A stretch of DNA of 63,283 bases, counting the filler, from Octopus bimaculoides (taxonomy: Eukaryota), in the NCBI RefSeq assembly GCF_001194135.2. It is 5 parts of 5 records of this genome, joined end to end, with 100 filler letters (N's around TTAATTAATTAA, not from the genome) between each part and the next. Parts side by side here need not be neighbours in the genome. Positions count along the whole stretch, not along the records: positions 1 to 31,875 come from NC_068995.1; 4 more parts are not named here. The stretch is one strand, 5' to 3'. The notes under the pieces were generated by a model. The model did not search any database. It had not been told where the DNA came from and worked only from the letters and a program-made list of their open reading frames with translations. A program made the position numbers and the translations under genes. Shown here in pieces: positions 1 to 25,860 of the stretch (within the stretch, counting starts at the first letter, position 1; every line of letters begins with the position of its first letter).

Positions 1-54
<54 letters not shown>

Positions 55-1766: not shown

Positions 1767-2151
1767 TGGCGGAATTTCAACACAAAACGTAACATCGGAA
1801 GAAATGCTGCCAAGCATTTTATCCGGCGCGCTAACGATTCTACTGCACGTCACCTTGATAAAAATATAACAATGATAATAATTTCTACTATAGGCAAAAA
1901 GCCTGAAATTTGGCGGGAGGGGACTAATCGATGATATCAATCCCAATGTTTCGCTGGTACTTAATTTATCAACCCTGAAAGGATGAAAGGCAAAGTCGAC
2001 CTAATAATAATAATCGTTATTTCAAATTTTTGCCACAAGGGCAGCTTGGTGGGGTAGGGGAGGTGGAGATGAATCGATTACATTGACCCAGTGTTCAGCT
2101 GGTACTTATTTTATCGACCCCAAAAGGATGAAAGTCAAAGCCGACCTCGGC
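1767..2151 (-). mobile_element. Cluster of partial family A SINEs (similar copies at 10380-10570, 13481-13640, 26015-26360 and 55350-55550 on minus; 50866-51050 on plus)
   Basis: Shared GGTACTTATTTTATCGACCCC..AAGGATGAAAGGCAAAGTCGACCTCGGCGGAATTTGAACTC segment. Confidence 0.75.
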
Positions 2152-2924
2152 GAACATCCGGCAGAAGAATTTCAGATAGACCGAGCGTGACCAACTGAGA
2201 CTACGGTTGATATCCGTAGTATTAGGTGGCCACGCTTGGGAATCCAGCCAGAAAGTGTAATGGTTGCTTCTGATAGGACTCTATGGATGGGGTGCTTGAG
2301 GATTCAACCGCCATGGCTCTCGAGAATGGGGAGCTGAGAAAATGAATGAATGGATACTACTACTACTACTACTACAACAATTTCCATTCCTTTATAAATG
2401 GACATCAACAAAGGCGATGGTGGCTCAACAAGGGAGCCTCTCTAAAGGATAACTCATACGGCTAGAAATACTAGACAAAGCCCTTCATTTTAGCTTCAAA
2501 GGGATAACGGAAAGATGCTGAGGAGAACAAAAAAACAAACAAAACAGTGACTGTGGTAAGGTCTGCAACCCCAAAGTAGGGTCTGCTCGATGGGGTTGAC
2601 CTGGGGCTAAAGAATAACAACAGCAGCAGGAACAGTGGTGGATATAGAATTGAATGTCGTTGTCCGTACAGGAATGTCAAAGATAAACAACAGCATTAAC
2701 CATCCACTCAAAGAATCCAGTATTCTTATTTCTAAGGAATTCGATTATCGTTATTTAAATTCAAAAGAAATATCTTTATTTGGAACTAAGACATACACGC
2801 ACCTGATTCAGAACTATCTCGAAACTACGCACCTACAAAACCCACACAGCTTTACACATTCATTAAATAAAGAGAAATAAACAAATAAGCTCTCTCTCTC
2901 TCTCCCTCTCATTCTCTCTCTATC

Positions 2925-2973
<49 letters not shown>

Positions 2974-3083
2974 GTATGTGTGTATAATGGAAAGTCGAGA
3001 AACAAACTGACAAAGATAAAAAAACAAACAAAAAAGACATAAGAAAACTTGACTAAACTTGACTAGACAAGATGTCTATAGCG

Positions 3084-3124
<41 letters not shown>

Positions 3125-3215
3125 GAATATATATATGCATGTATCTATATATTTTTTCATATACGCTATATATATATATATACACATACATACATAACAC
3201 ACACACACACATATT

Positions 3216-3246
<31 letters not shown>

Positions 3247-3936
3247 TTATATATATATTTACGAATATAAACAATATACATACTCACGCACACGCGTATG
3301 TGTGTGCGTGAGTGTTTGTGTGCGTGTGTTTGTGTAATTTACAAACAAGGGGAGAGAGGAGGGGTGAAATGAAAAGAAAAACGAACAAATAACGAATTAA
3401 TTCATTTTTGTTCAATTGTAATGCGAAATAACCTTCCCCCCTTCCTCTGTACACACACACACACACACACATACATACAAATGCATACATACATACATAT
3501 GATAGCGTGTCTGTGGGTTGGTGGTGGTGGTGGTGGTGGTGGTTTGTGCCCGTGGACAGCGAGGGAAGGCACCTATCGTTTTCGAAACACGTGTCGCGTG
3601 TAATAATGGCCGTAAACTGTCGATGGGTCGATATTGGTGTTTGTCATTTAGTGATGGAGGTATTTCAGCCGGATGTACATATGTCACGTGAGCTGTTTTA
3701 TTGTTGTATTCGTACTTTTAGTCATTTTGAGTTTATTCCTAAATGATCGATGGCGCGATTTATGCTTTGATATTTGCTGTTTGTTGAATTACTTGTTTGC
3801 ATGGATGTATGTGCGTGCGTGCGTGCGTGCGTGAGTATGTATGTATGAATATATGTGTATGCTGAGTAATGAGATGGGTGTTGTGTGTCAAGTTGATGCA
3901 ATCAAGATACATGTGGATGTAGACACACACACACAT

Positions 3937-3969
<33 letters not shown>

Positions 3970-5263
3970 ACATACACACGTAGATATATACGTATGTATA
4001 AATATTTGGGCCCTGCAGCTGTAAAGAACCGGTTTCGATCTCACTGATAAGGGCTAGGGTGAGTGAGTGAGTGAGTGTGTGACTAAATTTTCACTCGGAA
4101 ACGATTAGCTATCTCACACAACCTCTCACCATTTCTCTTCAAATCTTTCCAATCGGAGATTTTCTGATAAAAGATCGCGTCCAATCCCTTTGTATTTACT
4201 ATCAGCAGATCATTCGTTTCTTGTTTTCTACTGTAGACTTATACCATGCGCTCAAATATTTCATAGCTTTATGACTATTTTATTGAACACTTTCACTGAA
4301 TAGTACATTGCTGAGACTAATTACGGTGTGCTTTATGAAATGCGGATCAATTTTTGATTGCCCACGATGTACGTTCTTCGGAACTTTATTCTGTGCTGAT
4401 CACTTGAATTGATTTTTCCTAGTAAGATGATTTTAGCCGGTTGGATATAGAAATGCCTGCCTTTCGACATATTTCTCTTAAGTAAATGCTGGTTACAGAT
4501 GGATTTTGTCTTTTTACATCGCCTGATGACAGATACAGTTCCCGAAAGCTTTTAGTCAGGAGGGGGTAATGCCCATGACTCTTTATATGGTCACCGATGC
4601 TTGTGACGTAGTGTGGGAAGGGGAAGAACGAACTCTCAAATCAGAAATGTGGCGCAAATAATTGTAAGGGAGTAGAGTCTGTTAAAAGCATTTAAGAAAC
4701 CCCTTTAGCGGGGTCGGTTCCATAGCCAGTTAGTGTTAAAGTACGCCATGAAATGTAGATGCATGTATGTGTGTGTGTATGAATGTCATTGTTCAGTTTT
4801 ATTTCAAGATTTTTGGCCAATAGAGAAAGAGCCGGTTTCGAACCTAGATCCAGGGCTCCTTCATTGGAATTTCAACATCAACAACAGGGTATTTTTGTTT
4901 GTTTGTTTGTTTGTATTTATATGTGCAGATTTATATATGTATTCTCATACATATCGCTGCATATCTAGACATGCTCATACACACTTAAATGATAAACTAC
5001 TGGAAAGTTTTACAGATTCTTACAGTTCCAGTGATGGATCGGATCTGTAGTCTTCGGATCAGCTTTTTCCTTTCTAATTTTGAGAAGCCTAATTTCCTAA
5101 GTTTCGTACTCACCACAACTTTCTCTCACTCTTTCTTCCTGTTTCTGTTGTACCTGTTTTTCAAAGGTTCTTTGAAAAACAGGAACACAACGCACCACCA
5201 GGTCTAGGGATTGAAATCACAATCGTAAGATCGTGAGTACAACACTTTTACCACTAACCCATG

Positions 5264-5308
<45 letters not shown>

Positions 5309-6881
5309 GAGAGAGAGAGAGAGAGGTGTAAGACGTGGTAAAAAAAAGAGTGACTGAGTGGAAGACCTGCAAAATCCTGTGGGATTTCCAAATCCAATCA
5401 GACCAAGTGCTTGAGTACAAGAAGTAGGACCTAGTGGTGGTGTACAAGGTGAGCCACATACGCTGTACAGTTGACGTTGCGTGCTCCTCTGACACATGAA
5501 CAGCCAAGAAGGAAGACAAAGAATGAGATATATACAATCTTTTTATATATGAGAATGCTCGACTGGGAAAGGAAGAGGTTATTGATGTGTGTTTGGTGAA
5601 AAGGCATCAACGAATTGTGTAGACTATAAAGGAAATAGGGACAGCGTGCCCAACAGAGCTGCCACAAAAGCCTTTCCTTCTTGGCACAGCCAGAATCACA
5701 AAGAAAGTATCAACTGGTTGAAAATAACAGATAGAGAGGTAGCGTAGGCTCCTTAGCCATTATCAATGGGAAATACTAAGGGGGGCAACTCTGCACAGAT
5801 CTAATCAAGAAGTGGCTTTAACAAAAATACAGTCAACAACTTTGCTCGATTTGCGTTAGGAGACGGCCAAGATCGGGACAATTACAGTAAAATACCAGCG
5901 CCAAGCAAGATTTAGACATAAATGAACTTTAGGTTAGTTTTGTAAAAAATGTAAAAACACCATATTTGTCCAGTGCTGCCACCTGTCGGATTCCCAGACA
6001 CTGATGTTTCTAACTTTCTAGCCGTAATCAATGGAAAATACCGAAGAGAGACATCTCTGGACATAGTGTTTTCACACCTTTTTTTTTTTTTTCATCATAA
6101 GAGGAAATTTTTTTTCTGCACGGTAACTGCAGTAGATTTATCTTTAGCAGTTCAGATATGTCACAAACAGATTCTAACTAACCTAAAGTACGCTTATACT
6201 TAAAGATCTTCAACATACTTCTATCCCTGTTACTAACGCTAGTTTCATCATTCAAACGCTTGTCATGTTGTTCTTTCTTCTCTTAGTTACACACAACCTG
6301 TTGACGCCCATCACACAAAGCGAACTGACGAACGTTAATTGAGGAAATGTTTAGCCATATTTTGGCGGAGTAAAAAATGACGTAATCATTATGAAGGCTC
6401 GCCTTGACCGTTATCTGAAGACTTATTCAATGAAAATGAAAGGAGACGATTAGGAAATATTTGCTTAACATTAAAGAAAAAATAAGAGGAATTTTCGGGT
6501 TTCTTTCTTCTTTCATTTATATTTCTTTTCCTTTATTTTCTCATATTTTATTTCTTTTATTTTCCCTGTCTTTGTTTCCTTTGACGAAATCATAGAAAAG
6601 AATAAATCTTAAAATTCAACAGCAGAAAGAGTGAGAATTGTGGAAATGTGTATGTTTGGATGCGCATGAGGGTACGTTCGCGTGCGTGTGGACGTTTGTG
6701 ATAGAACAGGTTTAATTGTACCGAAATTGTGTGTTGAAAGGTATGAATATACAGACATATATATATATATATATATATACATTATACGCACACACAACAC
6801 ACAAATATATAAACGTGTGTATATATCTATATTATGCACATGAGTGTATGTTTGCACGTATGTGTGTGTATATGGATGTAA

Positions 6882-6988
<107 letters not shown>

Positions 6989-7599
6989 GTTGTCTATGTG
7001 TAACTGGGCGTTCTTACTGTTGAGATGTTATTTGGCTCCGGTCCTCGTTTGCATTTTGGTTGAAGGACTTTAAACTCTGTTCCACGCACCTGCCCACTTT
7101 GCCCAACCAACCTACGACACAGCGAGACGTGAGTTCAATACTATTGAAAAGCCTTGAAACACTAATGGGAAGAGCAGATGTCTCAAAGAGATTTATAGAA
7201 ATACTACAAGGATAATAACAACAAAGAAAGGAATAAAACAACAAATAACAAGGTGTGATTGCAAGCGTCCGTTTGAAAAAAAAACTTGAGTCTGAAATAC
7301 TACTACTAGTACTAATAATAATAATCTTTATTATTATTATTATTATTATTATTATCATTGATGACAATGCGTCGACAATAGCAAGAAAGGAAAATTCGCT
7401 TTTGAATTAAAACTTTATACTGGCCAACAATGCTACGGCAGAAGCAGCAGCAGCCACCACCACAAACAACAATAGCAACAACGGTAACAACAACTACAAC
7501 AATAGCAACAAGTGTTGCTTTTAACGAAATTAAATCAAAATATATACACCCACACAAACACATACATATGTATATAGATCTATATATACACACACACAT

Positions 7600-7631
<32 letters not shown>

Positions 7632-7676
7632 CACCCACACAAACACACATATAGATCTATATATATACACACACAT

Positions 7677-7710
<34 letters not shown>

Positions 7711-8369
7711 ATACACCCACACAAACACATACATATAGATCTATATATATACACACACATTATNNNNNNNNNNNNNNNNNNNNNNNNNNNNNNNNNNNNN
7801 NNNNNNNNNNNNNNNNNNNNNNNNNNNNNNNNNNNNNNNNNNNNNNNNNNNNNNNNNNNNNNNNNNNNNNNNNNNNNNNNNNNNNNNNNNNNNNNNNNNN
7901 NNNNNNNNNNNNNNNNNNNNNNNNNNNNNNNNNNNNNNNNNNNNNNNNNNNNNNNNNNNNNNNNNNNNNNNNNNNNNNNNNNNNNNNNNNNNNNNNNNNN
8001 NNNNNNNNNNNNNNNNNNNNNNNNNNNNNNNNNNNNNNNNNNNNNNNNNNNNNNNNNNNNNNNNNNNNNNNNNNNNNNNNNNNNNNNNNNNNNNNNNNNN
8101 NNNNNNNNNNNNNNNNNNNNNNNNNNNNNNNNNNNNNNNNNNNNNNNNNNNNNNNNNNNNNNNNNNNNNNNNNNNNNNNNNNNNNNNNNNNNNNNNNNNN
8201 NNNNNNNNNNNNNNNNNNNNNNNNNNNNNNNNNNNNNNNNNNNNNNNNNNNNNNNNNNNNNNNNNNNNNNNNNNNNNNNNNNNNNNNNNNNNNNNNNNNN
8301 NNNNNNNNNNNNNNNNNNNNNNNNNNNNNNNNNNNNNNNNNNNNNNNNNNNNNNNNNNNNNNNNNNNNN

Positions 8370-8426
<57 letters not shown>

Positions 8427-8483
8427 GTATATATATATATATATATATCTTATGTGTGTGTGTGTGTATAACGGTATACTTAC

Positions 8484-8709
8484 TGCTAGAAACATATCCA
8501 ACATGTCGTCGTTATTCCGGAAGGTTATGTCGTTCCATGGTATTCGTTCCTTCTTGTACTGTTGCTGTTCAAAAACGAACACGTGATCATTGAAGAATGA
8601 CTGAAGCTGCTCATTGGCCACATTGATACACAGCTGCTCGAAGCTGTTCACTCTGGCATTCTCGAATCCAGACATGTCCAGTATAGCCACCGCCGACAAA
8701 TCTTTGTCT
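8484..8709 (-). CDS. Myosin exon 10 containing switch II and the relay helix ([37 protein letters not shown]...DMFLA)
   Basis: tttggcAG / GTAAGT boundaries, 226 nt, phase 2-0. Confidence 0.96.
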
Positions 8710-11700
8710 CTGCCAAACGATAAACACAGGTAGTAGTAGTAGTAGTAGTAGTAGTAATAGTAGTAGTAGTAATTTATAACAAAAGTATAAAGTCGTTTGC
8801 AGAAAGGTAAAAGTTGATGAAATCGATCCCCAGGAATTGAGCGCCAACCAATTTTATACTTCGGTGAGATTTCAACTCTGAACGTGAAAAGCCCAAATAC
8901 CACGATGCTGTAATGATTCTAATAACCGACCGCCCAATGCACACATATACTGGTGGTAAATTGCAAGATTTGTTAGAGAGCACCAAACTACATTCGTTTC
9001 AGTATCAAGTATTGTCCAACTAAGCCATACAGGTTTCAAATCTTATCAAATTAGGTGTTGACTCTCAACAGTCCGGGGGCTGGCCGCATTACAATATAGA
9101 AATAGAGTTTAAAACAGATATAAAAGAATAATAAGGAAACCTTGTAGACTTACTTGTATTGAATGAGCGCCCCCAAGCGGACGTTCACTTGACGTACGAT
9201 CCAACCAAAGAGTCTGGCATATAAGACCTTGGCCAACGCATCACGACCGTCTGTGGCTTCGAAGAGAGTCTTGTTCTTGATCACTTTCTCATCTAAAGAC
9301 AGAGATAAAACGACGTAAAGACATCATCATCGGCATTGAAATTAATCATTATCGTCGTCGGCGACCATCGTTAGAAAGGAAAGTCAACCTCCTCCTCCTC
9401 CTCCTCCTCCTCATCATCATCATCATCGTCGTCGTCATCTTTAATCTTTTCTTTATACTCTTCCTCATTGTTATCGTCGTCATAGTCGATGATATATTTA
9501 CACACACAACACCTCCCACGCACACACACACCTGTCTATATACATCACCTCCGTAAAGATAGACAGAAAGATGCATCATTTATAAAGAGCGAGGCTGACA
9601 TAGAAATATATAAATAAATAGATTGCAGGTGAGGTGGGTGGATATATAGATTTTTATGCATAGACACATATATAAAGACACTCACCTCTTGTGAACGACG
9701 CGTTTGTAAGAAGAGCCTCTTCAAAACTGTCTTCTTGCAAACTCATCAGCTTACAAACTGCAAGATAAAAATAATAATAATATTATTGTTATTTCACAGA
9801 TGCGTAGAAACTACTGAAGGGAAATAAAAATGTTTTAGTGTTTTTCAATTAAGTCGATGTTCTGCAAAACAGTCGAGTAAAGGAACAATAGTTATGAGCG
9901 TCAGTGTTGGATTTAGCTTAATCTATCCGGAATATTGGATCTATTTGGGAAGATGTTGAGACGTACACATAAACGAAGATGACTTCTCTGCAAATGAATC
10001 GCTTTTCTCTCATCTTTTCACTAAAGAAACAAATGCAGCAAATCAACAAGTTGTGGGGGGGGGGGGTAAATAAAATAAAATTAAATTAAAAAATAATAGA
10101 GAAGCTTACCGTGATGTAAAGACATTTTGTCTGCAATAGTCACAGAATCAGTGTCTTCGACTTTAGAGAATGAGATATTGGTAATATGGAGGACAGAGGC
10201 GAGTAAAGTGAAAATGATGGAGATTTCCTGTGGGGGTTAAAACAACAATAACAACATCAATCAAAACAGTAACATCAACTTTGATTTCTAATACAGTCAC
10301 AATATCTCACACACTTTCTCTCTCTCTCTCACACACACAGTCACAATGCCTCCACATTTTGTGAGCAAGTAACAAGCGATGATACACACTCTAGCATTTC
10401 GCTGGTACTTTACATACACTCCAGTACTTGACTGGTCCTTCATTTTATTGGATTTTCCCTTGGAAGGGTAAACGGTCTTTGATAGGATTTGGACGAACGA
10501 GAAACGAGCGCAAATGAATACCGCAAACTATTTTGTTCGCTGCTCTACCGATTCTGCCAGTCCACAGCATCAACGTCAGCGAGACAACTAATTGCCTTTA
10601 CTAGGTTGCTTGATCTGCTACAAACAGCCGCCAAATTCCCATCAAATCATACCATAACGTCTTAAAAGATACATTGTATAATGCAGTCCTAGATATTGTC
10701 TAAAAATCAACGAGATGGTCATGGCTGGAGCATTGTTGATAATTGGTATGAATGAAGGATAACTTAAGGCTAAACAACAATACCACCAGCAACTACTACT
10801 ACTGTTTCTGTTGTTGCTGCTGTCGCTATTACTACTGCTACTACTAACTTTAACATAGGCCTAGGGTCACAAGTTTTAGAACAGGAGAGCTGTCAATTAC
10901 ACATTTTGTAATGTAGTCCTAGATACACTATGTACGAATATAAACGTAACGGCTGGAATTCCTGCTCGAATGTCTTTCAAAACAGGTCTACTCGCAGAAT
11001 CCTGACCTAGGGTTAAACAACAACATCAAGAACACCAGTGATCGCCAATCTTACCCAATCTGTGAATCCCACCACTTTTAGTAAAGTCAGTTGTTTATGG
11101 AACATGAATTTGTTGTGTTCGAAGTCTTCTTTGTCGCCGTAGATTGGTTGTTTCTTGTTTTCATTATGTAGGATTCTATAATAAATAGATAAACAAATAA
11201 ATAAATAAATAACAACAATAATAATAATTTTGCCTCACGTGCTAAAAGTTCTGCCAGCTTGCATCACTGGTGATGAATATGGTGATGGTAGTGATGGTGG
11301 TGTCACCCATTTTTAGAGGATGAAGCAGCCGATTATATCAGCACCAGTATTTGAATTGTACTTAACTTATACACACACACACGTATATATAGGGAGAAAA
11401 AAAATAGGGAATCTAATTAGAGAAGTAATATTTAATTACAAACCTGAAATCTTCCGGAGATTTGAGAAAATAATCACTGAGTTCGTTGTTTGTCATTCCA
11501 GCAAACATGTAGTAAAATATATGGAAGTTCTTTTCTCTGCAGCTTTGTTGAATGACGCGTGTCTTCTCCAGCAGGAAATCCTGAATTTGGGCTGAAATAC
11601 GTAAAACAACATATAGGTGTCGCTTTTACTTAGGCTAAAGACCCTCTCTCTGTTTCTATCTACCTATCTATCTATCTATTAATATTTGTTTTTTCTTATT

Positions 11701-12088
11701 AAAAGTCATAAATAAAAACAATCTAATATTAAATTGAAGGATAATTCGATACTTTTTGGTAGAGAGTGTATTTCTTATACCCATATTTCTTATACCCATA
11801 TTGTTGACGTCATAAGAATTTTATTGATTTTCGAAAGTGAAATAATACTTTTTCGGAATTGCAGGCCTTGAAGCAAACATAAAGTCATAAATAATTACAT
11901 ATAAATATTGGATTGGAAAACACTTTTGGATAGAAAAAGTCGAAGCTTTCCCATGGGCTCCAGGCCATATATCTGGAAAATGTGGGTTCAATTCTTATCG
12001 CCAATCTTCGATTTTTTTGTATCCCAAAGGGTTTTTCAACCCAATACTACAGGGTATTATATCTATATATATATACACACACACGTGT

Positions 12089-12141
<53 letters not shown>

Positions 12142-14663
12142 TTCGCATATATGCATGTTAATGTGACACCTACCACCAATGAGGTTTCCTTCCTGCGTAA
12201 ATTTCATCTCGAGATATTTGCCAAACCTGCTCGAATTGTCATTCATGATTGTCTTGGCATTACCAAAAGCTTCCAAAAGAGGGTTGACCTGTTTAATAGA
12301 ATAAAAATTAAAGACGTTCAGTTCTTTCTGCAAATCCAAAAAATATAACCTGCAGGATTTTTTACATTTTCTTTCATAACCGATTTAATTTATTTTCTTA
12401 TGCCCTGTTCAGAACAGGGGGGGGGGTCGTTAGATTCCATCACTTGTATTGGGGTCCTTCTTTATTGCAGGGGTTCACTGCAAAATGGTTTATCTCTGGG
12501 AATTGAGTAAGCCAATGCGACTTGTTTTATAACCGGTTCATTGGTGACTAAACCGGAAAACGGGCAACACTCCTCCTCCACGACATCGCCTTGGTGGGTC
12601 TAAAGTGCGACAGCTTGAAAGGTCTCGAAAAACTTGTTTAATTATGGCACATGAACTAAACAAAGAGTCAACGGCCATCGACCAAATCTAGAGACGGAGA
12701 GTGAGGAAGAGTTCCAATTAATGCTGTTGAGTATAGCATGGTTGATACGGCGCAGATTCTGTTGGCAGTCCCTGTCCCCCCCACCCTCGCTGTTGTATGT
12801 GTGTGTGTGTGTGTGCACGGATGCACGTATATTTCCGTTATCTATCTTTATGTTTAGTTCTGTATATGTGTGCATGCTCATCTACCTCTGTCTGTGAAAA
12901 TGAATGCATGTACATAAATGCAATAGCGCACGCGCGCATGCAAATATATATGTATATTTATTTTATTCTTTAATTTGAAGAGGTAGAGAGGAAGAAGGGA
13001 GGATGAAGACGAGAGGAAGGCCGTGACCTTTGCAAGCTCCCACCCTGAAGTGAACACGGTTGTTGACAAAATTAAGTCCTTGTCGGTTAATGTTGCAAAC
13101 GGCCTCGATCCCAAAAAACGTGGCAAAGAGAAAATTAAAGAAGTATCGGTTAACTTACCTCGGTGATTTTATTGGCCAACTGTTGTTGGCAATTGGATGT
13201 ACTCTGTTTAGAGATGTGTCGTATCATGTGTTTTGTACTTTCCGTTTTACCGGAACCAGACAGACCACTAACCAGAATGCACTGCACTCGGCCGGTCTCT
13301 CGCATTTTTTGGTACGCATTGTCAGCCAACCAGAAAATATGTGGTTCCAAAGAGCTTCGTATTTGCAAATTCTTATAACTTTCGTGAATCTGAAAAGACA
13401 AAATTTTCTGAATTATTATTCTGTCTTGTTTGGGGCACAAAGCAAGTTTTATTCTGATGGGAAGAAATAAGTTGATTAGACCCCCACCCCAGTGCTCAAC
13501 TAGTACTCATTTTCTCAACGCCAAAAGGATGAAGAGCAAAGTCGACTTTGGCGGAATTTAAGCTCCGAGCTTAATGAATCGGAAGAAATGCAGCTAAACA
13601 TGTTATCCGGCACTCTAATGAATCTGCCAGCTCACCACCCTTGTATCAGTACGTAAAGGAACGTAACTTACACCACAAACGTGTCATTGATTACTCTACC
13701 GATTCTGTAATAATTTCCCCCCTCATAATGAGATCAATTAATTAACTACAAAAGAAGCTATGTAAAAGTTCCTTTCTCGAATCGTGTTGGAGGAGGTCCT
13801 CTGCTGGCCCTTGTACGTGCTTGTGTAGGGGCTGCTCCTGTCAGTTTTTATAGGGGATTCTTCGTTGTTTTATGTGAAGGTTGTTTCTTTCATTTATGAA
13901 AGGGATCCCACATTAACGTGATGGTGCTTGGCGCAGAGGCTGGAGGTGTTACGATTGTAAGATAGTTGTTTCAATTCCAGAACTGAGAGGAGAGTTGCAT
14001 GCTTGTGCAAAATGCATCGTTTCACGTTGCTTCAGTCGACTTAGCTGTAAATAGCGTCCATGAATAGCAGGGAAATCAATCCTGCGATAGAACGACGTCC
14101 TATTCGGGGTTGGTGTGATTAGAAGAGAGTGTTGTGATCTCGGTTGCTTACTTGCGATAGAAATTTGGTATCGGGCCTCATGAGTTCTGGGGTCCGAGAC
14201 AGACCTTACGTTAAGCCCTATATTGACGCGAGTCCGGACTCATCCTTTGGTTTCTGTAATGATCCACTGCTTAGATCGATTGTGAGGTGATGCAGTGGCA
14301 TTCATGTCCGATGCATAAACAGAAAAATATATAAATGTATGCTAAACACTTGAGGACTTTCAAGAGCTGAACATTTAGTTATGAGAAGGGCTGACCTCGG
14401 GACATTGCAAACCAATCTAATTTGCTACAGAAACCGATCAAAGTTCTCTCTATAAGAAAAAGAATGACAGGTTTGAGGCAGAAATAACGCGCATGAATGG
14501 TCCAGTTGCGATTTCCAATGGAAGGGATTAAGACACAGATGGCTCATAAACACAAGGAAACGCTCAATGTGGATGGCGAAGCTGCTGCGATAATGGGGAA
14601 GAAACAACCCACCGAATACTGTGCCCTCTGGAACATCCTATCTCTATATGGACGTATTTTCCC

Positions 14664-14698
<35 letters not shown>

Positions 14699-15103
14699 AG
14701 GGATGACCAGCAAAAGTGGACTCCTATATGCTAGAAATAGATGCCGAATCATCTAACCACAAAAAAATATATGTTCTCAGTAAAAATTCAGCGACACAAC
14801 AGACAGTTTGTTGTGTCGCTGAATTTTTACTGAGAACATATATATTNNNNNNNNNNNNNNNNNNNNNNNNNNNNNNNNNNNNNNNNNNNNNNNNNNNNNN
14901 NNNNNNNNNNNNNNNNNNNNNNNNNNNNNNNNNNNNNNNNNNNNNNNNNNNNNNNNNNNNNNNNNNNNNNNNNNNNNNNNNNNNNNNNNNNNNNNNNNNN
15001 NNNNNNNNNNTTGTATGTAATATAATTTTAATCTTCGGATTTTTTTAATATGCTAGACCACTGGTTCAAATTGATTAATATCAATTTCTACCCTCATAAA
15101 TAA

Positions 15104-15141
<38 letters not shown>

Positions 15142-16380
15142 CCAAGACAATGTGTGATGGTGTATGGCAGTTCTTTAGAAAGAATTTTCTTTTACGTACC
15201 TCATTGGTGTAGCAGTCGAGTGATTGGAAAGGGTTAATTGACACCAGGACATCGGCGATGTAAGTCTGAAAATAGATATAATCATAGTTTTTACACACAC
15301 ACACACATATATATATATATATGAAACAAACATATAAAAATAATGACGTCGACGATGGTCCTAAACAGCAGGGCTTACGAATATAGACGACATACAGGAA
15401 ATAGCACTGCTACGGGCTGCACACATCAGTAAAAATAATAAAACGGAAACAAACCACAGCACATACACAAAGCATAGAGATACACGTTTGGTAGTGGAGT
15501 GGAAAGCAAGGAATAAAAAAACCCTGTAAAAGAATCATGATGAAAGAGACCATTAAATGAAGTGCAAGCTAAGACCTTTTTACAATAGTTCTGCAAGAAC
15601 AGAGCTGATCTGGGGGCAACAAAGTAATTCAAACGATCCAATAAAGAGAAATCTCTGTTATGTGGTGGTTTAAACTGTTAGAAAAAGCAGCCAAATCACA
15701 CACCAATGGACCTTACTGACTTAAATACTTCGGATATTGGAGTACTTGATATCGCTAAAAAGAAAAAAAACAATGGGTCCACAACGTCGGAAGGTCTTTT
15801 ATTGTATATTTACTCGGTCAGAGCTGACCAGGGGTTAAACAATAACAACGACTCTAAAGCGTGGATGTGCTGTAAATTTGACGAGTGCTTTTCGTTAGAA
15901 CTGAGGGGCGAGTTCAAATATTTTAATGAGCGCAATTAGACGCAAATTATACAACAGCGAGACGCAGTAAGTATATGTAGTGCTGTTCCAGCAATTAAAA
16001 GAAATAATAGAACTTTTAAAGTATGATGTTTTATAAAATATCATTTAATTCAATTTACAAAAACTTAACAACTATAGAAAAAAAAAAAAAAATTTTTTTT
16101 TAATCTTTAATATTTGCTAAAACAGGAAACGAAACAGTTTGTGGTTAAAAAGCTGGACGGGAAAAGTAAATCGGATGACTAAGAAGTGAATGTTTTAACT
16201 GGAGCATTGTTTACAATAAATTAATAAAAAGAGCTTCATTACAACAATGTGTATGTGTGTATGTACACACACACACACACACACACACACANNNNNNNNN
16301 NNNNNNNNNNNNNNNNNNNNNNNNNNNNNNNNNNNNNNNNNNNNNNNNNNNNNNNNNNNNNNNNNNNNNNNNNNNNNNNN

Positions 16381-16424
<44 letters not shown>

Positions 16425-16887
16425 TTATGCAGAGAGTTTACCAGTGCATTTCCCACACAATTTCAACCGGAATTAGCATGTTTACATTATCTTATAAAGA
16501 TTCCGTGTGTCTTTCACCTCGGCTTGACAATAAGGTCACATGGCTCCGACTAAAGAGGAACTGATATTCACTTTAAGAAACCGCAAAATATGCTGCACAT
16601 TTGCCTGCTCTTCTCACTCTGTAGCTGACTCTTCCTCTCTCTCTCCGCCCTCCTCTCGCGCGCTTTCTAAATGTGTGGTTAAAGAGTCTACTTACGAATT
16701 CATGCATTGAATTTAAATTCATGCGCGCACTAACACAGATGCACACTGCACTTCACTCACACATCCGCACTCACACACATAAATGTATGCATACATACAC
16801 ATCTATCTATCTATATATAAACACACACGCATGCATACATACACTCACACATATACACACACACGCCTACATGCATACATGCATGCA

Positions 16888-16927
<40 letters not shown>

Positions 16928-17181
16928 TGTGTGTGTGTGTCGTTTGTAGAAATACATAAATCCGGAGAAGCACACTAAGATGTAGAGCAGTTAAGATTAT
17001 AATGGGGGAGGCCGGTTTATGGGATTACCCTGAGTTTGTCGCTCATAAGGGGTTTAGATATTTCCATAATTTTCAGGAAGTCTCTCTCTCTCTCTCTCTC
17101 TCTATTCCTTTGACAAATCATTTCACTAAGGAAGAAAGAGACAGTATTTTAGCATTTTCTACCTTGTCTTATTTTCCTTTC

Positions 17182-17222
<41 letters not shown>

Positions 17223-19159
17223 TATGTATATAGCTATGTATAGATAAATATGTATGTGTGTGTGTATCCATATACAGAGAAGATATTCGCACAATTCCCA
17301 CACCATTTAAACAATAATTTGTATATTATTATCTAACAAGGATTCCATGTGTCTGTCTATTAAAAGCCTGATAATACGTCACGTGGCTTCGGCCAAAGAG
17401 GAATTGACTTGAATTATAAGATAACACAAAAGGTATGACGAACTTTTTCTCTGCAATCTTTCTGTATGTTTCTCAGGTCACCTCTCGCTTTCCCTCCTGA
17501 AATCTATCTTTTAACAGTGACTATGTAGGAATTTACATATAAAAATTGAATAAACTCATCTTCAAACACAGACACGTATGTACACTGCCTGCATACGTAC
17601 ATCCACACACACAAACACACACACACACACACACACACAGACACTCACAATGGCACTCACACATACATATATGCATACATATGTATATGTACACATATGT
17701 GTGTGTATGTGTGTGTGTGTGTATACCTATATGTGTGTATTCGTTTACTCTTTTACTCGTTTCAGCCATGCGGCTGTGGTTATGCTGGAGCACCACCATG
17801 GGAATATATATACGTATATTACATATACATACATACGTATATTTTTGTATATGTATATGTGTGTAAGTGAATCTAACGGTTTTTGTGTGTTATTTTAAAT
17901 GGCTTATAAACACCTTCCACGCTGTATTTGTTTTCGCTCCAGCCCATGATCTCAGATCAGGGTATTTGCTATGCAAGTACATCTCCGTAATATATATACA
18001 AACATGAAATAAAAGCAGCAGTAGTGTAATTAACATTATCAACCACCTATACTTAATGCTTCGTGTATTCGCCGTTGCTAATGACGTCCTGGAGAATACC
18101 ATCTGAAAGCGCCGGATGTTTTTACTTATGCGTTAAGTCTATGGAGCGGATAACGCTTATTAATACATATATTGATTTGGCCAAGGAATAATTCTTGTGA
18201 ATTACTTTTCTTCTACTGTAGGTTTTCTGATGAGTGATGACGCTAATACGGATCAAAGAGAACTAGAAATAGGGACAAACGGTTCTAGTTGCTTCCAATG
18301 GTTGCATCAAAAGTAATGTTCCGCGTTTAAGTGTTGATGTGTCTTGATGTGTTCTCCTTCTTCTTTTGTCCTCAACGTCAACCTTGAAGGCATTCCCAAA
18401 AGAAGTTATCGACAAGCAAATGGGGCGTCCATTAGGCCTCTCTCCTTTGAAGAATCTGACAGGCCACTGGTGATACTTGATATGACAGTTATCAAGAGAT
18501 TTCCTCAGAAATTCACTGCACCGTTTTTTCCACACCCCTCACTCATGGCAACCACAGGAGAAGATCTTGTCATATTACCGATCTTGGATAGGAGATGAGA
18601 GTCAACTTTGGATAGTACCCTGCTCAGTATGACCTTGATGTTGGCCATTTCTTCATGTTCGTAGACTTCAGTATAAGTAACAAACGTAACCAAGTGGAAA
18701 GTATGTATATGTTCCAGTCACTGGTTCAAGATACAGCCTTGCTTATAAAGGGCGCCTATCTATTAGAAGTACCCATGGAGTTGGTGCGAAAGGCTACACA
18801 ACTGATTCCCAGCCTCATAAAACCCTCTGTTGCCTACGACTCCGACGAAAACCTGATTTTGGAAATTCTTTTTATTCTCCCCAAATTTTTCCTTTGCTTA
18901 GCTTACTCCATAATCATTTACAGAAAGTAAACAGAAAGTTACAAAAAATATTCATTATTTCGGTTGGTTAAAACTGAATAAACACAAAAAGGGGACCAAA
19001 CTAGATAACTTTTTATATTTATGACGAATCGCCTTTATTTGAGGAAACGGAAAATGGAAGCCGAGCACGTGGTACGTAACGTGAGACTGAAATATTGGCT
19101 CATACTCCGATAAACGTTTCCAACGTAAGTAGATTCGCTACCGCAAGGAACATTTTGTA

Positions 19160-19203
<44 letters not shown>

Positions 19204-21055
19204 AATATGTGTGTATGTGAATGTATGTATGTGTGTCTGCATATTCGTCCAGTTCCCACAAATTTCCACTATAATTTGTATAGTTATTTTAGTCAATTGT
19301 CATATCTTATAAAGATTGCATGCGCCTATCGTCAAAGCTTGACAATATGTCACGTGGCTTCGGCTACAAAGAAACTGACGTTAATTCGAAGTAAACATAA
19401 AAAATTGGCGAATACTTTATCTGCTTTTTTTTCTCTCAAACTTCATGATTTAACACAGGTTATAGACTAATTGATGTACAGAATTTACGCGCACACACAA
19501 ACACACACACACACACATGTATCTATATTGTAATGGGTCCTTAACTTCCGATGAAGTAATATGTTGTCATATACTGAGCCCCAGTTTCCTCTATCTGTTG
19601 TGTGCCAGAGTTCAGTTCCAACAATTCACCAATCCCCTATCTGTCCAACTTTTCCGCTGACCGCAGCGTCTTTCCCCGTCAAGAGTCCTTTGAAAAATGG
19701 TTTTCGCAAGGCTATTGGCTTATGTTCTATGACCCATATCATTCCAGCTTTATTTTCTTCACCATTGTGAGATCTGTGTGGGATCGAATGTGATATAGGA
19801 CGGTTTCCCAAACCCTCACATTCGTGCTGCGGTTCAAATATGAGAAGACTAATCCACCGAGGAGTACGTCTTCCAGTTCGGTGAAAGAAACAAATTTTGT
19901 AAACATTTCTTGTGAACTCAAGATCAGAGATATTCAAAAAAGTTCCATGCACCTCGACAAGTTTCAGTTGTCAAAGTGAACGACGCATTTGCTCCCTAGA
20001 TTAGAGAACAGTTTTTAATGCCCATTAACCCTTCCCTATTGCGCATAGTATTTTACATGTAAACACTCAGCATCGATGATATTCTTCATTAACAGAAAGG
20101 GACATATCGTTGATCCCCGTTCCCTTCAACGATTTCTTAATTTTTTTCTCGGAGTAACATCATCATTTGAGCCTGATCGATTGCCTGATCGATTCTAGTA
20201 GTACTCTTTCTTTCTCTCACATACACACAAACCCATACACACTTACATACAAATACATATATATACTTACACACGTGCATCATACATATATTCCGAAGCA
20301 ACAATTTCAGATTAAATATTCATCGGATTGAACGCGCGTGCGTGTATGTGTGTGGGTGGGTNNNNNNNNNNGTGTAATTTAAACATTATATCAGAACCGT
20401 TACGAAACGACCCCATTTCCTACGTTTTGTTGATTCGTCCTCACACACAAAGAAAAGGGCCGGGCATGTCAAAATACACGCCTGTAAGTGTGCTTGTGTA
20501 AATGTGTGTATATGTGTGTGTGTCTGCGCGCGCGCGCGTGTGTCTAGTGGTGGGGTGTAAATGACGTCGAACTCTTTACACTATAACACCATCAACACAT
20601 CACGTGATCTGTTCGAGGACAAAAGTTGAATCCAAGTTGTATTTCTTTGTCCCTTTCAATAACTGAGAACACACACTAACGTACACATTCATATATATAT
20701 ATATATATATATATATACGCATACACACAAACAAACGTACATACATACACATACATATATGCATAACACAAACATATACACATAAAAACTTTAAAAAATA
20801 GGCTGCGAGCTGGCAGAATCGTTAGCACGCCGGGCGAAATGCTTGACGATACTTCGTCTGCCGCTACGTTCTGAGTTCAAACTCCGCCGAGGTCGACTTT
20901 GCCTTTCATCCTTTCGGAGTCGATTAAATAAGTACCAGTTACGCACTGGAGTTGATATAATCGACTTAATCCGTTTGTCTGTCCTTGTTTGTCCCCTCTG
21001 TGTGTAGTCCCTTGTGGGTAGTAAAGAAATAACACATAAAAACTTAAATAGGTAC

Positions 21056-21090
<35 letters not shown>

Positions 21091-21922
21091 GATAGATAGA
21101 TAGATGATCCATACAAAGAAATACATAAACAACGCACATATATATGCATACACACATGAATATATACAACCGTAGATGTACATACGTATATACATACATG
21201 TAAACATATATATACATACACAAGCATATCTATAATATTCTGTTACTGGTTTCAGTGAAGGAACTGCGGCCATGTTAGTCCATCAATCTCAAGGGTTTTC
21301 GACACTTGAAGTTGATGGCTCAGCATTATCAATATTATTGCATATATTTATTTTATCGATCTGCATTTATCGATTCGGAATAATATGCTTTAGACATTCG
21401 TAAGTCGACATCTGGGTTGACATGATTAAATGTAAAGGTAGACACAGGTGTATGTATGTATGTATCTGTATGCATGTATGCATTTATGTAAGATGTATGC
21501 CGTATGTATATATACATATATATGGTTTCTTCTACTATATAAAGTTAATTTTGAACGATCACTTGATGAGTAGCAAAGTTGAATCGATAAATGCAGAATA
21601 AACATCTGCAATGGCATTAGATGCTGAGTCATCAACTTCAAGTGTCTAAAACCTTATAAATTGATGGACTAACATGGCCGCCGTCCCTTCACTGAGACCA
21701 GTAACAGAATATTATAGGTAGGCTTGTGTATATATGTTTAAATGTATGTATATACATATGTGCCTCTACAGTTGTATATATGCATGTGTGCATATATTTA
21801 CGTACGTGTTTATGTATTTCTTTGCATAGATTATTCATATATATATATATATATATAAAGACGGTGTTCTAGCATAATTGCAGTCAGCTGACTGAAGCAA
21901 GTAAAAAAATAAAAGATTATAC

Positions 21923-21975
<53 letters not shown>

Positions 21976-22476
21976 TGGTAACTGATCTGTTATAAAACTG
22001 CTGCTGCTAATGATGATGATAATAATGATGATGATGGTAATTGTAGTTTATAACAAAGTGCACACATTTGAAGAAGAGATGAAACTCTTTTGTTCGGAAG
22101 GCAAACCATTTCATTGATCCCAGAAGAATTGGATGAAAAGAAATCAAAATTCTATTCTGGTGGAATTTGATCTCAGAATTTAAAAGAAACGGAGATAAAT
22201 TCTTAAGCTTTTATTCCGTTCTCCCTGTCTTCCTGTCATCCTCCCATATATATCTGCGTGTGTATTTGTGTATGTGTGTTTGTGTGTTCGTGTGTGCGTA
22301 TGTGTGAGTGTTAGAATTAATCTAACGTGTTTCACATATGTGTTTCCCGTCCATTTGTTTAACAGCAGGCTGCAAGGTCAATATAGGGACCACCTTTGAA
22401 TTATAACACCAGTCTATCAAAATTATACAAAAAAGAAAGAAAAAAGCAAAATAAAAACAGAGTCAATACTAATGTG

Positions 22477-22559
<83 letters not shown>

Positions 22560-24530
22560 NNNNNNNNNNNNNNNNNNNNNNNNNNNNNNNNNNNNNNNNN
22601 NNNNNNNNNNNNNNNNNNNNNNNNNNNNNNNNNNNNNNNNNNNNNNNNNNNNNNNNNNNNNNNNNNNNNNNNNNNNNNNNNNNNNNNNNNNNNNNNNNNN
22701 NNNNNNNNNNNNNNNNNNNNNNNNNNNNNNNNNNNNNNNNNNNNNNNNNNNNNNNNNNNNNNNNNNNNNNNNNNNNNNNNNNNNNNNNNNNNNNNNNNNN
22801 NNNNNNNNNNNNNNNNNNNNNNNNNNNNNNNNNNNNNNNNNNNNNNNNNNNNNNNNNNNNNNNNNNNNNNNNNNNNNNNNNNNNNNNNNNNNNNNNNNNN
22901 NNNNNNNNNNNNNNNNNNNNNNNNNNNNNNNNNNNNNNNNNNNNNNNNNNNNNNNNNNNNNNNNNNNNNNNNNNNNNNNNNNNNNNNNNNNNNNNNNNNN
23001 NNNNNNNNNNNNNNNNNNNNNNNNNNNNNNNNNNNNNNNNNNNNNNNNNNNNNNNNNNNNNNNNNNNNNNNNNNNNNNNNNNNNNNNNNNNNNNNNNNNN
23101 NNNNNNNNNNNNNNNNNNNNNNNNNNNNNNNNNNNNNNNNNNNNNNNNNNNNNNNNNNNNNNTATATATGTCTTCTCTCGTTTTGTGCACACACAAACAC
23201 ACACATTCATACATACATATTAATATATCCATCTATCTGTGTCTGTGTCTATCTATCTATCTATCTACCTGTGTGTCTATCTACCTGTGTGTCTATCTAT
23301 CTGTGTGTCTATCTACCTGTGTGTCTATCTATCTGTCTGTTTCTATGCATACATAGATATGCGTATGTGCGTGTGCGTGCGTGTGTGCGTACATATGTTT
23401 GTGTATTCATGTTTTCTCTCTCTGACCGTCTCTCTCTCTTTCTCTCTTTCTCACTCTCTCTCCCTGTACACACACAAATTAATATATATTTATTTTTTGT
23501 TTTTTTTTGGAACGCAACACCCAATCCAGTCCGGGAATCGAACTCACTACTTCCTGATTGTGAACCTTCACATATGAAGGCGCATGGCTCAGTGGTTAGA
23601 GCATCGAGCTCACAATCATGAGGTAGTAAGTTCGATTCCCGGACCGGGCTGCGTGTTGTGTGTTCTTGAGCAAGACACTTTATTTCACATTGCTCCAGTT
23701 CCCTCAGCTGTAGAAATGAGTTACGACGACAGTAGTGCCAAGTTGTATCGGTCCCTTTGCCATTCCCTTGGATAACATCGGTGGTGTGGAGAGGGGAGTC
23801 TGGTGTGCATGGGCGACCACTGGTCTTCCATAAACAGATTTGTGCCTCAGGAGGGGAGGGGGACTTTCTAGGTGCAATCCCACAGCCATTTATGACCGAA
23901 GAGTCCTTTATATAGATGTGTATGTAGGTATGTATGTATGTGTGTGTGTACATGTGTGTGCGTATGCATCTGTGTACATGCGTTTCTCTCTCTCTCTCTC
24001 ATATATATATATANNNNNNNNNNNNNNNNNNNNNNNNNNNNNNNNNNNNNNNNNNNNNNNNNNNNNNNNNNNNNNNNNNNNNNNNNNNNNNNNNNNNNNN
24101 NNNNNNNNNNNNNNNNNNNNNNNNNNNNNNNNNNNNNNNNNNNNNNNNNNNNNNNNNNNNNNNNNNNNNNNNNNNNNNNNNNNNNNNNNNNNNNNNNNNN
24201 NNNNNNNNNNNNNNNNNNNNNNNNNNNNNNNNNNNNNNNNNNNNNNNNNNNNNNNNNNNNNNNNNNNNNNNNNNNNNNNNNNNNNNNNNNNNNNNNNNNN
24301 NNNNNNNNNNNNNNNNNNNNNNNNNNNNNNNNNNNNNNNNNNNNNNNNNNNNNNNNNNNNNNNNNNNNNNNNNNNNNNNNNNNNNNNNNNNNNNNNNNNN
24401 NNNNNNNNNNNNNNNNNNNNNNNNNNNNNNNNNNNNNNNNNNNNNNNNNNNNNNNNNNNNNNNNNNNNNNNNNNNNNNNNNNNNNNNNNNNNNNNNNNNN
24501 NNNNNNNNNNNNNNNNNNNNNNNNNNNNNN

Positions 24531-24571
<41 letters not shown>

Positions 24572-24574
24572 TAG

Positions 24575-24607
<33 letters not shown>

Positions 24608-24608
24608 A

Positions 24609-24645
<37 letters not shown>

Positions 24646-25660
24646 TCATATGATCATATATATGTGTATATACATACATAAATAAATACATGTATAGATG
24701 TAAATGTATAAATATATATGTACACATTTACATATGTACATATATATACATATATATATATGTATATACATACATACACATATACATTACATACACATGC
24801 ATAGACACACTCAAACATACGCACACATGCCTATATACATATTTTCTGTATATAAACAATAACATGGTTTATATACATATAACTGGATACTCGTATGTTT
24901 GTATGTGCATACATATGCACGTTTGAGTGCTTGTAGGTCGGTAGGTAGGTAGGTAAGTAGGCATCATCGAAAATGATAATGCAAAGATCCTATGGGATTT
25001 TATGATTCAGTGCGACCATGAGATAGAAAATGGGAAACCAGACAGTGTTAATTGAGAAACCAAGCAAATGATGCTGGATCATAGATATAGCATACCCAGC
25101 TGACAACAAGGTATGTGATAAGGAAGAAAGAAAAGTCGATAGATATGACAGGTTAGCTTGGGAGGTGAAGACAGTTGTGGTCGATGAAAAAGGTGGTAGT
25201 AGTACCAATAATTGTCGGAGCCCTGGAAACAGTGAATAAAAATCTTGAGAAGTACATGGAACAAATAGGGGTTGCAATAAGGGTGGAGCACTTGCAGAAA
25301 ACAGCACTGCTTGGAACCACTCGAATACTCCGGAAGGTGCCCGAAAAATATGAGGTGTTACCTTAGTTCACTGGAAGTGAACAACTGACACCGTAGTACA
25401 TCTCCAGCATTAGAAACTGTGCAAAGGCAATAATAATAATAATAACCGTTTCTGTTATAGGCACAAAGCCTGAAATTTAGGGTAAGGGGGCCAGTCGATT
25501 TTATCGACCCCAGTACTCAACTGGTACTTATTTCATCGACCCCAAAAGGATGAAAAGTAAAGTCGAAACTCGGCGGAATTTGAACTCAGAACGTAGTGAC
25601 GAGCGAAATACCATTAACGCTTTTCGTCCAGCGCGCTAACGTCTCTGCCAGCTCGCCGCC

Positions 25661-25707
<47 letters not shown>

Positions 25708-25846
25708 GAGGAAGAAGGAGAGAAAGAAGACTTACGTAGTATTTCTGCAGTAAGTATCTGTCATGTAAATGTTTCAGAATGATATTTTCCTCCAAGACAG
25801 GTAATTGCGATAAGTCTTCGATTGAAGTGGTCATCATTCCGGCCAT
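8484..25846 (-). CDS. Unconventional myosin motor domain gene (class III-like, no kinase recognised; candidate myosin-motor chitin synthase), 10 coding exons, 3' incomplete
   Basis: Hand-spliced exons 25846-25736, 15265-15200, 13389-13159, 12288-12174, 11591-11444, 11175-11055, 10227-10110, 9757-9686, 9292-9154 and 8709-8484 total 1347 nt (449 aa). All introns are GT-AG with matching phases. Motifs in the correct order: [100 protein letters not shown]. Confidence 0.95.
9154..9292 (-). CDS. Myosin exon 9 ([46 protein letters not shown])
   Basis: tctttAG / GTAAGT boundaries, 139 nt, phase 1-2. Confidence 0.95.
9686..9757 (-). CDS. Myosin exon 8 ([24 protein letters not shown])
   Basis: tcttgcAG / GTGAGT boundaries, 72 nt, phase 1-1. 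Confidence 0.9.
10110..10227 (-). CDS. Myosin exon 7 ([39 protein letters not shown])
   Basis: cccacAG / GTAAGC boundaries, 118 nt, phase 0-1; I..LLA.ILH..NI.F motif. Confidence 0.93.
10585..11025. repeat. Degenerate dispersed repeat, family F (also 15655-15850, 42290-42490, 55860-55925)
   Basis: Recurrent GTCCTAGATA...GGCTGGA...GACCTAGGGTTAAACAACAA segments. Confidence 0.5.
11055..11175 (-). CDS. Myosin exon 6 ([40 protein letters not shown])
   Basis: ttatAG / GTAAGA boundaries, 121 nt, phase 2-0. It bridges the phases of exons 5 and 7 and ends in the ..GF.. motif. Confidence 0.88.
11444..11591 (-). CDS. Myosin exon 5 ([32 protein letters not shown]...PEDFR)
   Basis: Not in the ORF track; read by hand. 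tttcAG / GTTTGT boundaries, 148 nt, phase 1-2. Confidence 0.95.
12174..12288 (-). CDS. Myosin exon 4 containing switch I ([38 protein letters not shown])
   Basis: aacAG / GTAGGT boundaries, 115 nt, phase 0-1. Confidence 0.96.
13159..13389 (-). CDS. Myosin exon 3 containing the P-loop ([11 protein letters not shown]...[18 protein letters not shown])
   Basis: cttttcAG / GTAAGT boundaries, 231 nt, phase 0-0. Confidence 0.95.
15200..15265 (-). CDS. Myosin exon 2 ([22 protein letters not shown])
   Basis: ttcAG / GTACGT boundaries, 66 nt, phase 0-0; YTY.G.IL.A.NP-type motif. Confidence 0.93.
18380..18840 (+). mobile_element. Decayed CR1/L2-like LINE fragment
   Basis: HITDLG...MYMFQSLVQ...[18 protein letters not shown] resembles KDLG...LYKSLVRP...LE.VQRKATKLIP; many stops. 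Confidence 0.3.
19530..20140 (-). mobile_element. Decayed CR1/L2-like LINE 3' fragment
   Basis: SSQEMFTK...[31 protein letters not shown] resembles VQRRFTK...SY.ERL..L.L..L..RR.R.DL..VYKI. Confidence 0.3.
20801..21031 (+). mobile_element. tRNA-derived SINE, family A
   Basis: GCGAGCTGGCAGAATCGTTAGC head, GAGTTCAAA B-box and a GTCGACTTTGCCTTTCATCCTTTCGG core; many copies in the window. Confidence 0.85.
21103..21836. repeat. Long fold-back repeat (~270-bp arms, ~200-bp spacer)
   Basis: Arm 21103-21376 is the imperfect reverse complement of 21581-21836 (e.g. TATAATATTCTGTTACTGG / CCAGTAACAGAATATTATA). Confidence 0.9.
23577..23910 (+). mobile_element. tRNA-derived SINE, family D (second copy 34089-34420 on minus; decayed copies near 60-150 and 53005-53140)
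   Basis: GAAGGCGCATGGCTCAGTGGTTAGAGC A-box and GTTCGATTCCC B-box, with a shared body in both full copies. Confidence 0.85.
24975..25440 (+). mobile_element. R4/Dong-clade (restriction-like endonuclease) LINE, 3' fragment
   Basis: Fragments [16 protein letters not shown] and [14 protein letters not shown]...[16 protein letters not shown] are typical of the C-terminal RLE region. Ends at (TAA)n. Confidence 0.8.
25430..25662 (-). mobile_element. tRNA-derived SINE, family A (full length)
   Basis: Reverse complement of the family A consensus, flanked by (TAA)n on both sides. Confidence 0.85.
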
Positions 25847-25860
25847 CTGTTGACCACTGA
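25736..25860 (-). CDS. Myosin exon 1 ([37 protein letters not shown]); ATG at 25846
   Basis: Acceptor ttttgcAG before 25860 and donor GTAAGT after 25736. Matches the motor N-terminal DL..L..L.E..I...L..RY motif. Confidence 0.85.

Follow-up and report, generated by a model that had tools for sequence, protein, structure and literature searches.

We analyzed a stretch of 63,283 nucleotides (nt) of DNA from Octopus bimaculoides (NCBI RefSeq assembly GCF_001194135.2; hereafter the window), which joins five parts of five records with 100 filler letters between each part and the next, and in its first piece (positions 1–31875, from NC_068995.1) we found a minus-strand gene encoding the head of a myosin motor. 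Very probably, this locus is the 5′ part (coding exons 1–10) of the O. bimaculoides ortholog of a lophotrochozoan myosin-chitin-synthase gene. We infer the fusion to a synthase in Octopus from orthology, because the window is without a synthase exon and the Octopus vulgaris protein model P0274 is without a synthase domain; the activity of the head and the tissue in which it would act are likewise inferred.

Identification of the motor head

Ten minus-strand exons, running from 25846 down to 8484 with GT...AG borders at every intron, were assembled from coding segments located by stop-to-stop translation and by tblastn with homologs, the borders being set from the splice sites. They splice into a stop-free coding sequence of 1347 nt, and the encoded 449 amino acids (aa) are identical to residues 1–449 of UniProt entry A0A0L8GZY1 (P0001), which is from the same species. 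The Pfam Myosin_head profile matched residues 10–446 of this product over profile positions 2–432 of 679 (E = 1.4e-134); this is far beyond a chance match, and roughly two-thirds of a myosin motor, counted from its N-terminus, are encoded in the window. An earlier note on this DNA, made from the sequence alone, had described a 449-aa spliced motor with a start codon at 25846 just before the motif IEDLSQL. Both were borne out, with the motif beginning at residue 9, 8 residues after the start. The same note had recognized no kinase exons in the 37 kilobases (kb) upstream of the motor, most of which lie outside the first piece; tblastn with three MYO3 kinase domains found none in the whole piece, including its 6 kb upstream of the gene (best E = 0.34).

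Phylogenetic placement of the head

From an exhaustive HMMER search, followed by checks of motifs and domains, it emerged that class III-like heads lacking a kinase occur with three different tails: chitin synthase (e.g., Lottia P0122, 2202 aa, and Lingula P0123, 2374 aa), MH2 (Acanthaster P0121, of class-80) and SH2 (Antedon P0124 and Pleurodeles P0131). The raw scores of the kinase-less heads were 432, 429, 403 and 377 bits, and because such scores do not separate the tail types, the lack of a kinase is insufficient on its own for calling a synthase. The earlier note had argued from a kinase-less, class III-like head directly to a chitin synthase; its outcome is largely right, but the step itself was incomplete, since equally similar heads carry MH2 or SH2 tails.

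We aligned the 449-aa region in up to 273 motors and built bootstrapped neighbor-joining trees with two distance measures, the final trees comprising 250 motors, 439 columns and 100 bootstraps (paired values below refer to the two measures). The heads of O. bimaculoides and O. vulgaris grouped together with a bootstrap of 1.0, as did these two with Argonauta hians P0300 (1.0), and the octopods were joined by Liolophura P0009 and Lottia P0313 with values of 0.98 and 0.95. This group fell inside a clade of 86 sequences (0.89 and 0.76) in which a synthase tail is present in 73 of the 75 members having any recognized tail or extra domain. The 28 MH2-tailed motors formed the sister clade of this synthase-tailed clade, with the octopus head excluded from it; neither clade took in the 45 kinase-headed MYO3 sequences or any of the SH2-tailed motors. 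Earlier, separately built neighbor-joining trees also placed the octopus head in the synthase-tailed clade, and its nearest relatives of known tail are all chitin synthases. The combination of HMMER search and phylogeny, which the earlier note had proposed as a check, thus put the head with synthase-tailed motors and not with MYO3. By its sequence, the octopus head is assigned to class-36 of Kollmar and Mühlhausen (2017) and not to class III; in class-36 members the motor begins inside the first 10 residues, which is also true of the octopus gene.

The sampling of full-length relatives depended on the query that was used. A chimeric query of 2203 aa, consisting of the octopus head and the Lottia P0122 tail, retrieved full-length fusions and brought in Atrina P0302, Argonauta P0300, Lottia P0313, lophotrochozoan MH2 myosins and mollusc MYO3 sequences. 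A 411-aa query had returned proteins of 334–719 aa, named "myosin-IIIb-like" and without a synthase, as though a "motor-only" family existed; we rejected this family, given that the search lists proteins of near-query length and that the chimeric query found the fusions. When the synthase half of Lottia P0122 served as the query, 16 proteins were returned, and none of them came from a cephalopod.

Orthologs in other octopods

The complete fusion was found in Argonauta hians, whose protein P0300 ("chitin synthase chs-2-like, partial", 2327 aa, GCA_054771915.1) is 85.65% identical to the octopus head across residues 4–449 of both proteins. Pfam identified Myosin_head, Chitin_synth_1, Chitin_synth_2 and Glyco_trans_2_3 in P0300, which also contains the motifs GEDRW, QRRRW and SWGTRE. 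Like the octopus head, with which it shares the maximally supported group described above, P0300 has the same motor start and the same GLSGSGKT P-loop; unlike the 449 residues in the window, its model includes a membrane region and a GT2 domain, while a converter segment is missing from it. The proposal of the earlier note that this locus is the 5′ half of a motor-coupled chitin synthase is therefore favored by the synthase-tailed clade and by the full fusion in Argonauta, but no synthase exon is present in the window to complete it.

In O. vulgaris, the 667-aa model P0274 matches the 449 residues colinearly throughout, with 97.3% identity (12 differences). Ahead of them it has a 54-aa N-terminal extension without a recognized domain, and behind them come a non-myosin stretch and the converter. 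The relay region is missing from P0274, and the converter is missing from P0300, which does have the relay region; these complementary omissions suggest a complete motor, with exons that were missed in different models. In the window, the minus-strand segment 7101–7187 matches the non-myosin stretch of P0274 at 79% over 29 residues. We considered it as a coding exon and rejected it, as a TGA follows from the equivalent acceptor, and judging from these sequences the stretch in P0274 is probably an annotation artifact. A second myosin-headed chitin synthase of O. vulgaris, P0354 (2151 aa), lies on another chromosome, in a contig of 135.6 Mb, which implies that octopods keep at least two paralogs of the myosin-chitin-synthase family.

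The public model of the O. bimaculoides gene itself also appears to be flawed at its 3′ end. A0A0L8GZY1 (477 aa) ends in 28 residues, LLLPLLLLLFVVVAAAASAVALLASIKF, which come from low-complexity sequence at 7410–7493 (minus strand), across the assembly gap at 7764–8369. These residues are absent from the O. vulgaris and Argonauta orthologs, and the tail looks like a gene-model artifact.

Split gene models in other animals

Short motor proteins without a synthase were also encountered outside the cephalopods. The Gigantopelta relative P0006 lies 170 base pairs upstream of a synthase gene, P0279, whose sole myosin match covers profile positions 550–679. In two rotifers (P0002 and P0004), a motor gene of 640–650 aa and the next gene together match Lottia P0122 colinearly, starting at its residue 13 and continuing to the end of the synthase domain. 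Annotations of Gigantopelta (L001), Adineta (L004) and Didymodactylos (L005) thus split the fusion into a motor gene of 584–650 aa and a synthase gene, with the motor gene labeled "myosin-IIIb-like" or left unnamed and the break falling at about the same place, around loop 2 and ahead of the converter. Split gene models account for the short relatives that the 411-aa query had returned.

Motif signatures and the octopod P-loop

We compared motif residues across the 250-sequence alignment. A Trp following PHIF was present in 37 of 73 synthase-tailed heads versus 7 of 176 others, several of the seven being untailed fragments of the same clade, and the variable position of switch II was Ser, Ala or Cys in 72 of the 73 synthase-tailed heads versus Phe or Tyr in 145 of the 176 others. 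The octopus head has Trp after PHIF and Ser in switch II. The earlier note had cited PHIFW and LDMSGFEN as resembling synthase heads, and these counts support that resemblance; the signature is empirical, being drawn from the present alignment and not from a published definition.

Switch I of the octopus head (NDNSSRFGK) and the Asp, Gly, Phe and Glu of its switch II are intact. Its P-loop, at 13243–13266 (minus strand) in exon 3, reads GLSGSGKT in place of GESGxGKT. At the substituted position, Leu occurred only in O. bimaculoides, O. vulgaris and Argonauta, and of the other 246 aligned motors 241 have Glu and five have Asp; because it is conserved across octopods, the Leu is no sequencing error. 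We entertained the idea that the octopod head no longer cycles as a motor and instead anchors the synthase to actin, either slowly or locked to its nucleotide, which we regard as conceivable, if unlikely.

Comparison with known motor-synthase systems

Knowledge of the myosin-chitin-synthase family goes back to 2006 and its classification to 2014–2017, with a published range that includes bivalves, gastropods, annelids, brachiopods and rotifers (PMC3942024, PMC3942036, PMC5583752). A survey of animal chitin synthases makes no mention of cephalopods or Octopus (PMC3942024), and our literature search found no paper describing a cephalopod myosin-chitin synthase.

The founder of the family, Atrina rigida CS1 (Q288C6, P0302, 2286 aa), resembles the octopus gene in its kinase-less N-terminal motor, in the Trp after PHIF and in the small switch II residue, and it falls in the same large clade. 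Its head, however, is only 47.3% identical to that of the octopus and has the canonical P-loop Glu, and Atrina is a shell-forming bivalve, whereas the octopus is without an external shell. Because of this low head identity, we consider Atrina CS1 to represent a paralogous lineage within the family. The closest non-cephalopod relative of known tail is Lottia gigantea LOTGIDRAFT_111741 (P0313, 2293 aa), a gastropod protein with a synthase tail and 51.6% identity, which has the canonical P-loop Glu, unlike the octopods.

The class III myosins (MYO3A/B and ninaC) are related motors with head identities of about 38–44%, and the O. vulgaris ortholog and many other relatives of the octopus gene receive automatic "myosin-IIIb-like" names. 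Class III proteins are distinguished by an N-terminal kinase, by DIFGFE and by PHIFA or PHIFG, whereas the window contains no kinase exon for the octopus gene, which belongs to another clade. The fungal class XVII enzymes, likened here by description, follow the same logic of a motor joined to a chitin synthase, but they arose by an independent, convergent fusion from another myosin lineage (PMC3942024, PMC3942036).

Exon layout and assembly gaps

Exon 1 (25736–25846; all exons are on the minus strand) encodes residues 1–37, from the start ATG at 25846 to QKYY, is followed by the donor GTAAGT and was matched in tblastn by P0001, P0274 and P0300. An AG acceptor lies directly upstream of its ATG, and it is there that the O. 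vulgaris model splices its 54-aa 5′ extension. Exon 2 (15200–15265, residues 38–59) lies beyond the 10,470-nt intron 1 (15266–25735), which contains four assembly gaps, and exon 3 (13159–13389, residues 60–136) carries PHIFWLAD and the P-loop. LEAFGNAKT and switch I are encoded by exon 4 (12174–12288), HIFYYMFAG by exon 5 (11444–11591) and VVGFTDW by exon 6 (11055–11175), and these are followed by exons 7 (10110–10227), 8 (9686–9757) and 9 (9154–9292), which are coding and spliced into the same 449-aa frame. Exon 10 (8484–8709) contains switch II, LDMSGFEN, and ends in DMLDMFLA at a phase 0 GTAAGT donor, so that the motor is cut at Pfam position 432 of 679. The start of intron 10 occupies positions 1–8483, downstream of exon 10.

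The piece at 1–31875 has a G+C content of 37% and eight runs of N, including the artificial one at its end. Four of the runs lie within intron 1 (16292–16380, 20362–20371, 22560–23162 and 24014–24530) and one within intron 2 (14847–15010). In tblastn, homologs from rotifers and gastropods align over the joins between exons 1, 2 and 3 with no residues missing; because these homologs are gapless at the joins and O. vulgaris P0274 is colinear over the 449 residues, no exon is hidden in the gaps of introns 1 and 2. Four gap edges inside the gene abut TA, TG or AT dinucleotide microsatellites, as one edge of the gap at 7764–8369 abuts a TA array. Microsatellites are the usual cause of such assembly gaps, and these edges provide a third line of evidence against the loss of coding sequence in them. 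The gap at 7764–8369, which starts 115 nt past exon 10, could hide exon 11.

Other features of the window

Dinucleotide arrays (TA, TG, AT or AG) were noted beside gaps at 7562–7713, 8370–8448, 16381–16421, 22495–22559 and 24531–24645, and the window as a whole is rich in dinucleotide microsatellites. Short translated motifs recur on both strands at 1680–2000, 2098–2280, 13430–13561, 20877–21242 and 26022–26305, which suggests that these segments of introns and flanks are copies of a dispersed repeat. Upstream of the gene, two overlapping open reading frames of 174 and 75 aa at 28735–29365 (minus strand) have no Pfam match; the second carries a degenerate zinc-knuckle-like sequence, CFKCGLKGDIRAKC, and the pair may be a retroelement gag remnant. 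Pfam searches of five other long open reading frames (six translated stretches, two of them overlapping) and scans of the window for tRNA genes and Rfam families gave no match.

Evidence against the assignment and alternative explanations

Several results weigh against assigning the locus to a myosin-chitin-synthase gene. In tblastn searches with P0002, P0006, P0007, P0122, P0123, P0279, P0274 and P0300, we found neither motor exons past residue 449 nor synthase exons in positions 1–8483, and neither P0300 beyond residue 456 nor any synthase part matched the window. The absence of the tail from these 8.4 kb downstream of the motor is expected, since the orthologous genes span about 108 kb in Argonauta and 166 kb in the O. 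vulgaris model, and by this comparison the synthase exons are expected tens of kb past position 1. About 110–170 aa of the motor core are missing from P0274, which has no synthase domain, and no gene is called within 10 kb of it. Similarly, no synthase exons were found in the 10–12 kb downstream of the Batillaria and Liolophura relatives, a null result that is uninformative because the introns are large. The Liolophura sinensis copy has two frameshifting single-base insertions (L003, 26469–26482 and 30823–30830), the first within LEAFGNAKT, immediately 5′ of switch I, and the second in the switch II exon, which points to a pseudogene or else to an error of assembly. Our trees are neighbor-joining trees on distance estimates and not maximum likelihood trees, and their deep bootstraps are moderate (0.76–0.89). 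Lastly, the replacement of Glu by Leu in the P-loop means that normal ATPase activity of the octopus head is not assured.

Some of these same results would also be accommodated if the gene were motor-only or decaying in the genus Octopus, its synthase having been separated by fission or lost, leaving a free short motor or an incipient pseudogene. The end of P0274 after the converter, with part of the motor core missing and no neighboring gene called, would fit such a course, as would the two frameshifts in the Liolophura relative (which is flagged LOW QUALITY) and the P-loop substitution unique to octopods. We nevertheless consider it decidedly unlikely. The Argonauta ortholog is a full fusion, and the ten exons are intact, with frames and splice sites whole and with conservation of 97.3% toward O. 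vulgaris and 85.7% toward Argonauta. Since P0274 and P0300 miss different parts of the motor, missed exons fit better than true loss; the odd exon of P0274 is only 79% identical to its counterpart at 7101–7187, versus 97% for the motor exons, and meets a stop in O. bimaculoides. Split or shortened models of the myosin-chitin-synthase family are, moreover, common in other species.

It is highly improbable that the head in the window instead comes from a myosin with an MH2 tail or from a "myosin-IIIb-like" protein with an SH2 tail. Class-80 of Kollmar and Mühlhausen comprises the MH2-tailed myosins of Ambulacraria (PMC5583752), and lophotrochozoan MH2 myosins group close to class-36 (PMC5583752). 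By HMMER score, Acanthaster P0121 reached 429 bits versus 432 for the best synthase-linked match, and Antedon P0124 reached 377 bits. In the trees, however, the 28 MH2-tailed sequences, which include mollusc, annelid and brachiopod members, stand apart as a sister clade, the SH2-tailed motors lie further out, and it is chitin synthases alone that make up the nearest relatives of known tail; the small switch II residue of the octopus head likewise follows the synthase signature. A true class III or XVI myosin, with kinase or ankyrin exons upstream of the piece or in the gap at 26823–27350, is scarcely credible: databases do name the O. vulgaris ortholog "myosin-IIIb-like", its model does have an extra 5′ exon and the searchable upstream sequence amounts to 6 kb, but the 54-aa extension is without kinase similarity, kinase-headed MYO3 (cephalopod and bivalve sequences included) and XVI-like sequences cluster apart, and the motor starts within the first 10 residues, as in class-36.

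Proposed mechanism and significance

If the locus is the head of a myosin-chitin synthase, the whole protein would be about 2300 aa long, beginning from its first residues with a kinase-less, actin-binding ATPase head. After the head there would be a short neck of IQ-like sequence, a membrane region with multiple passes and the catalytic GT2 domain of a chitin synthase. To judge from the family, the cytoplasmic head would couple the membrane-embedded synthase to cortical actin, so that the cytoskeleton would control where the enzyme is placed or delivered and thereby where chitin is extruded. A tie of this kind between the enzyme and the cytoskeleton has been proposed for the shell synthases of molluscs and, in the convergent class XVII enzymes of fungi, demonstrated (as summarized in PMC3942024). 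As to the tissue, our guess is the beak, the radula, the stylets or the sucker lining.

What is new here is the assignment of the Octopus locus to the myosin-chitin-synthase family; the family itself was known already, as was the Argonauta ortholog, which had been automatically named a chitin synthase. The result is the re-annotation of a truncated gene model and reveals no new kind of gene or biology. Two public models are corrected by it, A0A0L8GZY1, whose tail appears spurious and which is named "myosin motor domain-containing protein", and O. vulgaris CAI9733599.1, named "myosin-IIIb-like", both of which would be heads of chitin-synthase genes. If the anchor reading of the octopod-specific P-loop change were true, it would amount to a lineage-specific rewiring of the tie between chitin deposition and the cytoskeleton in shell-less cephalopods. 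For cephalopods more broadly, the gene is a candidate for cytoskeleton-guided chitin deposition in their hard parts, including the beak, the radula, the stylets and the sucker linings.

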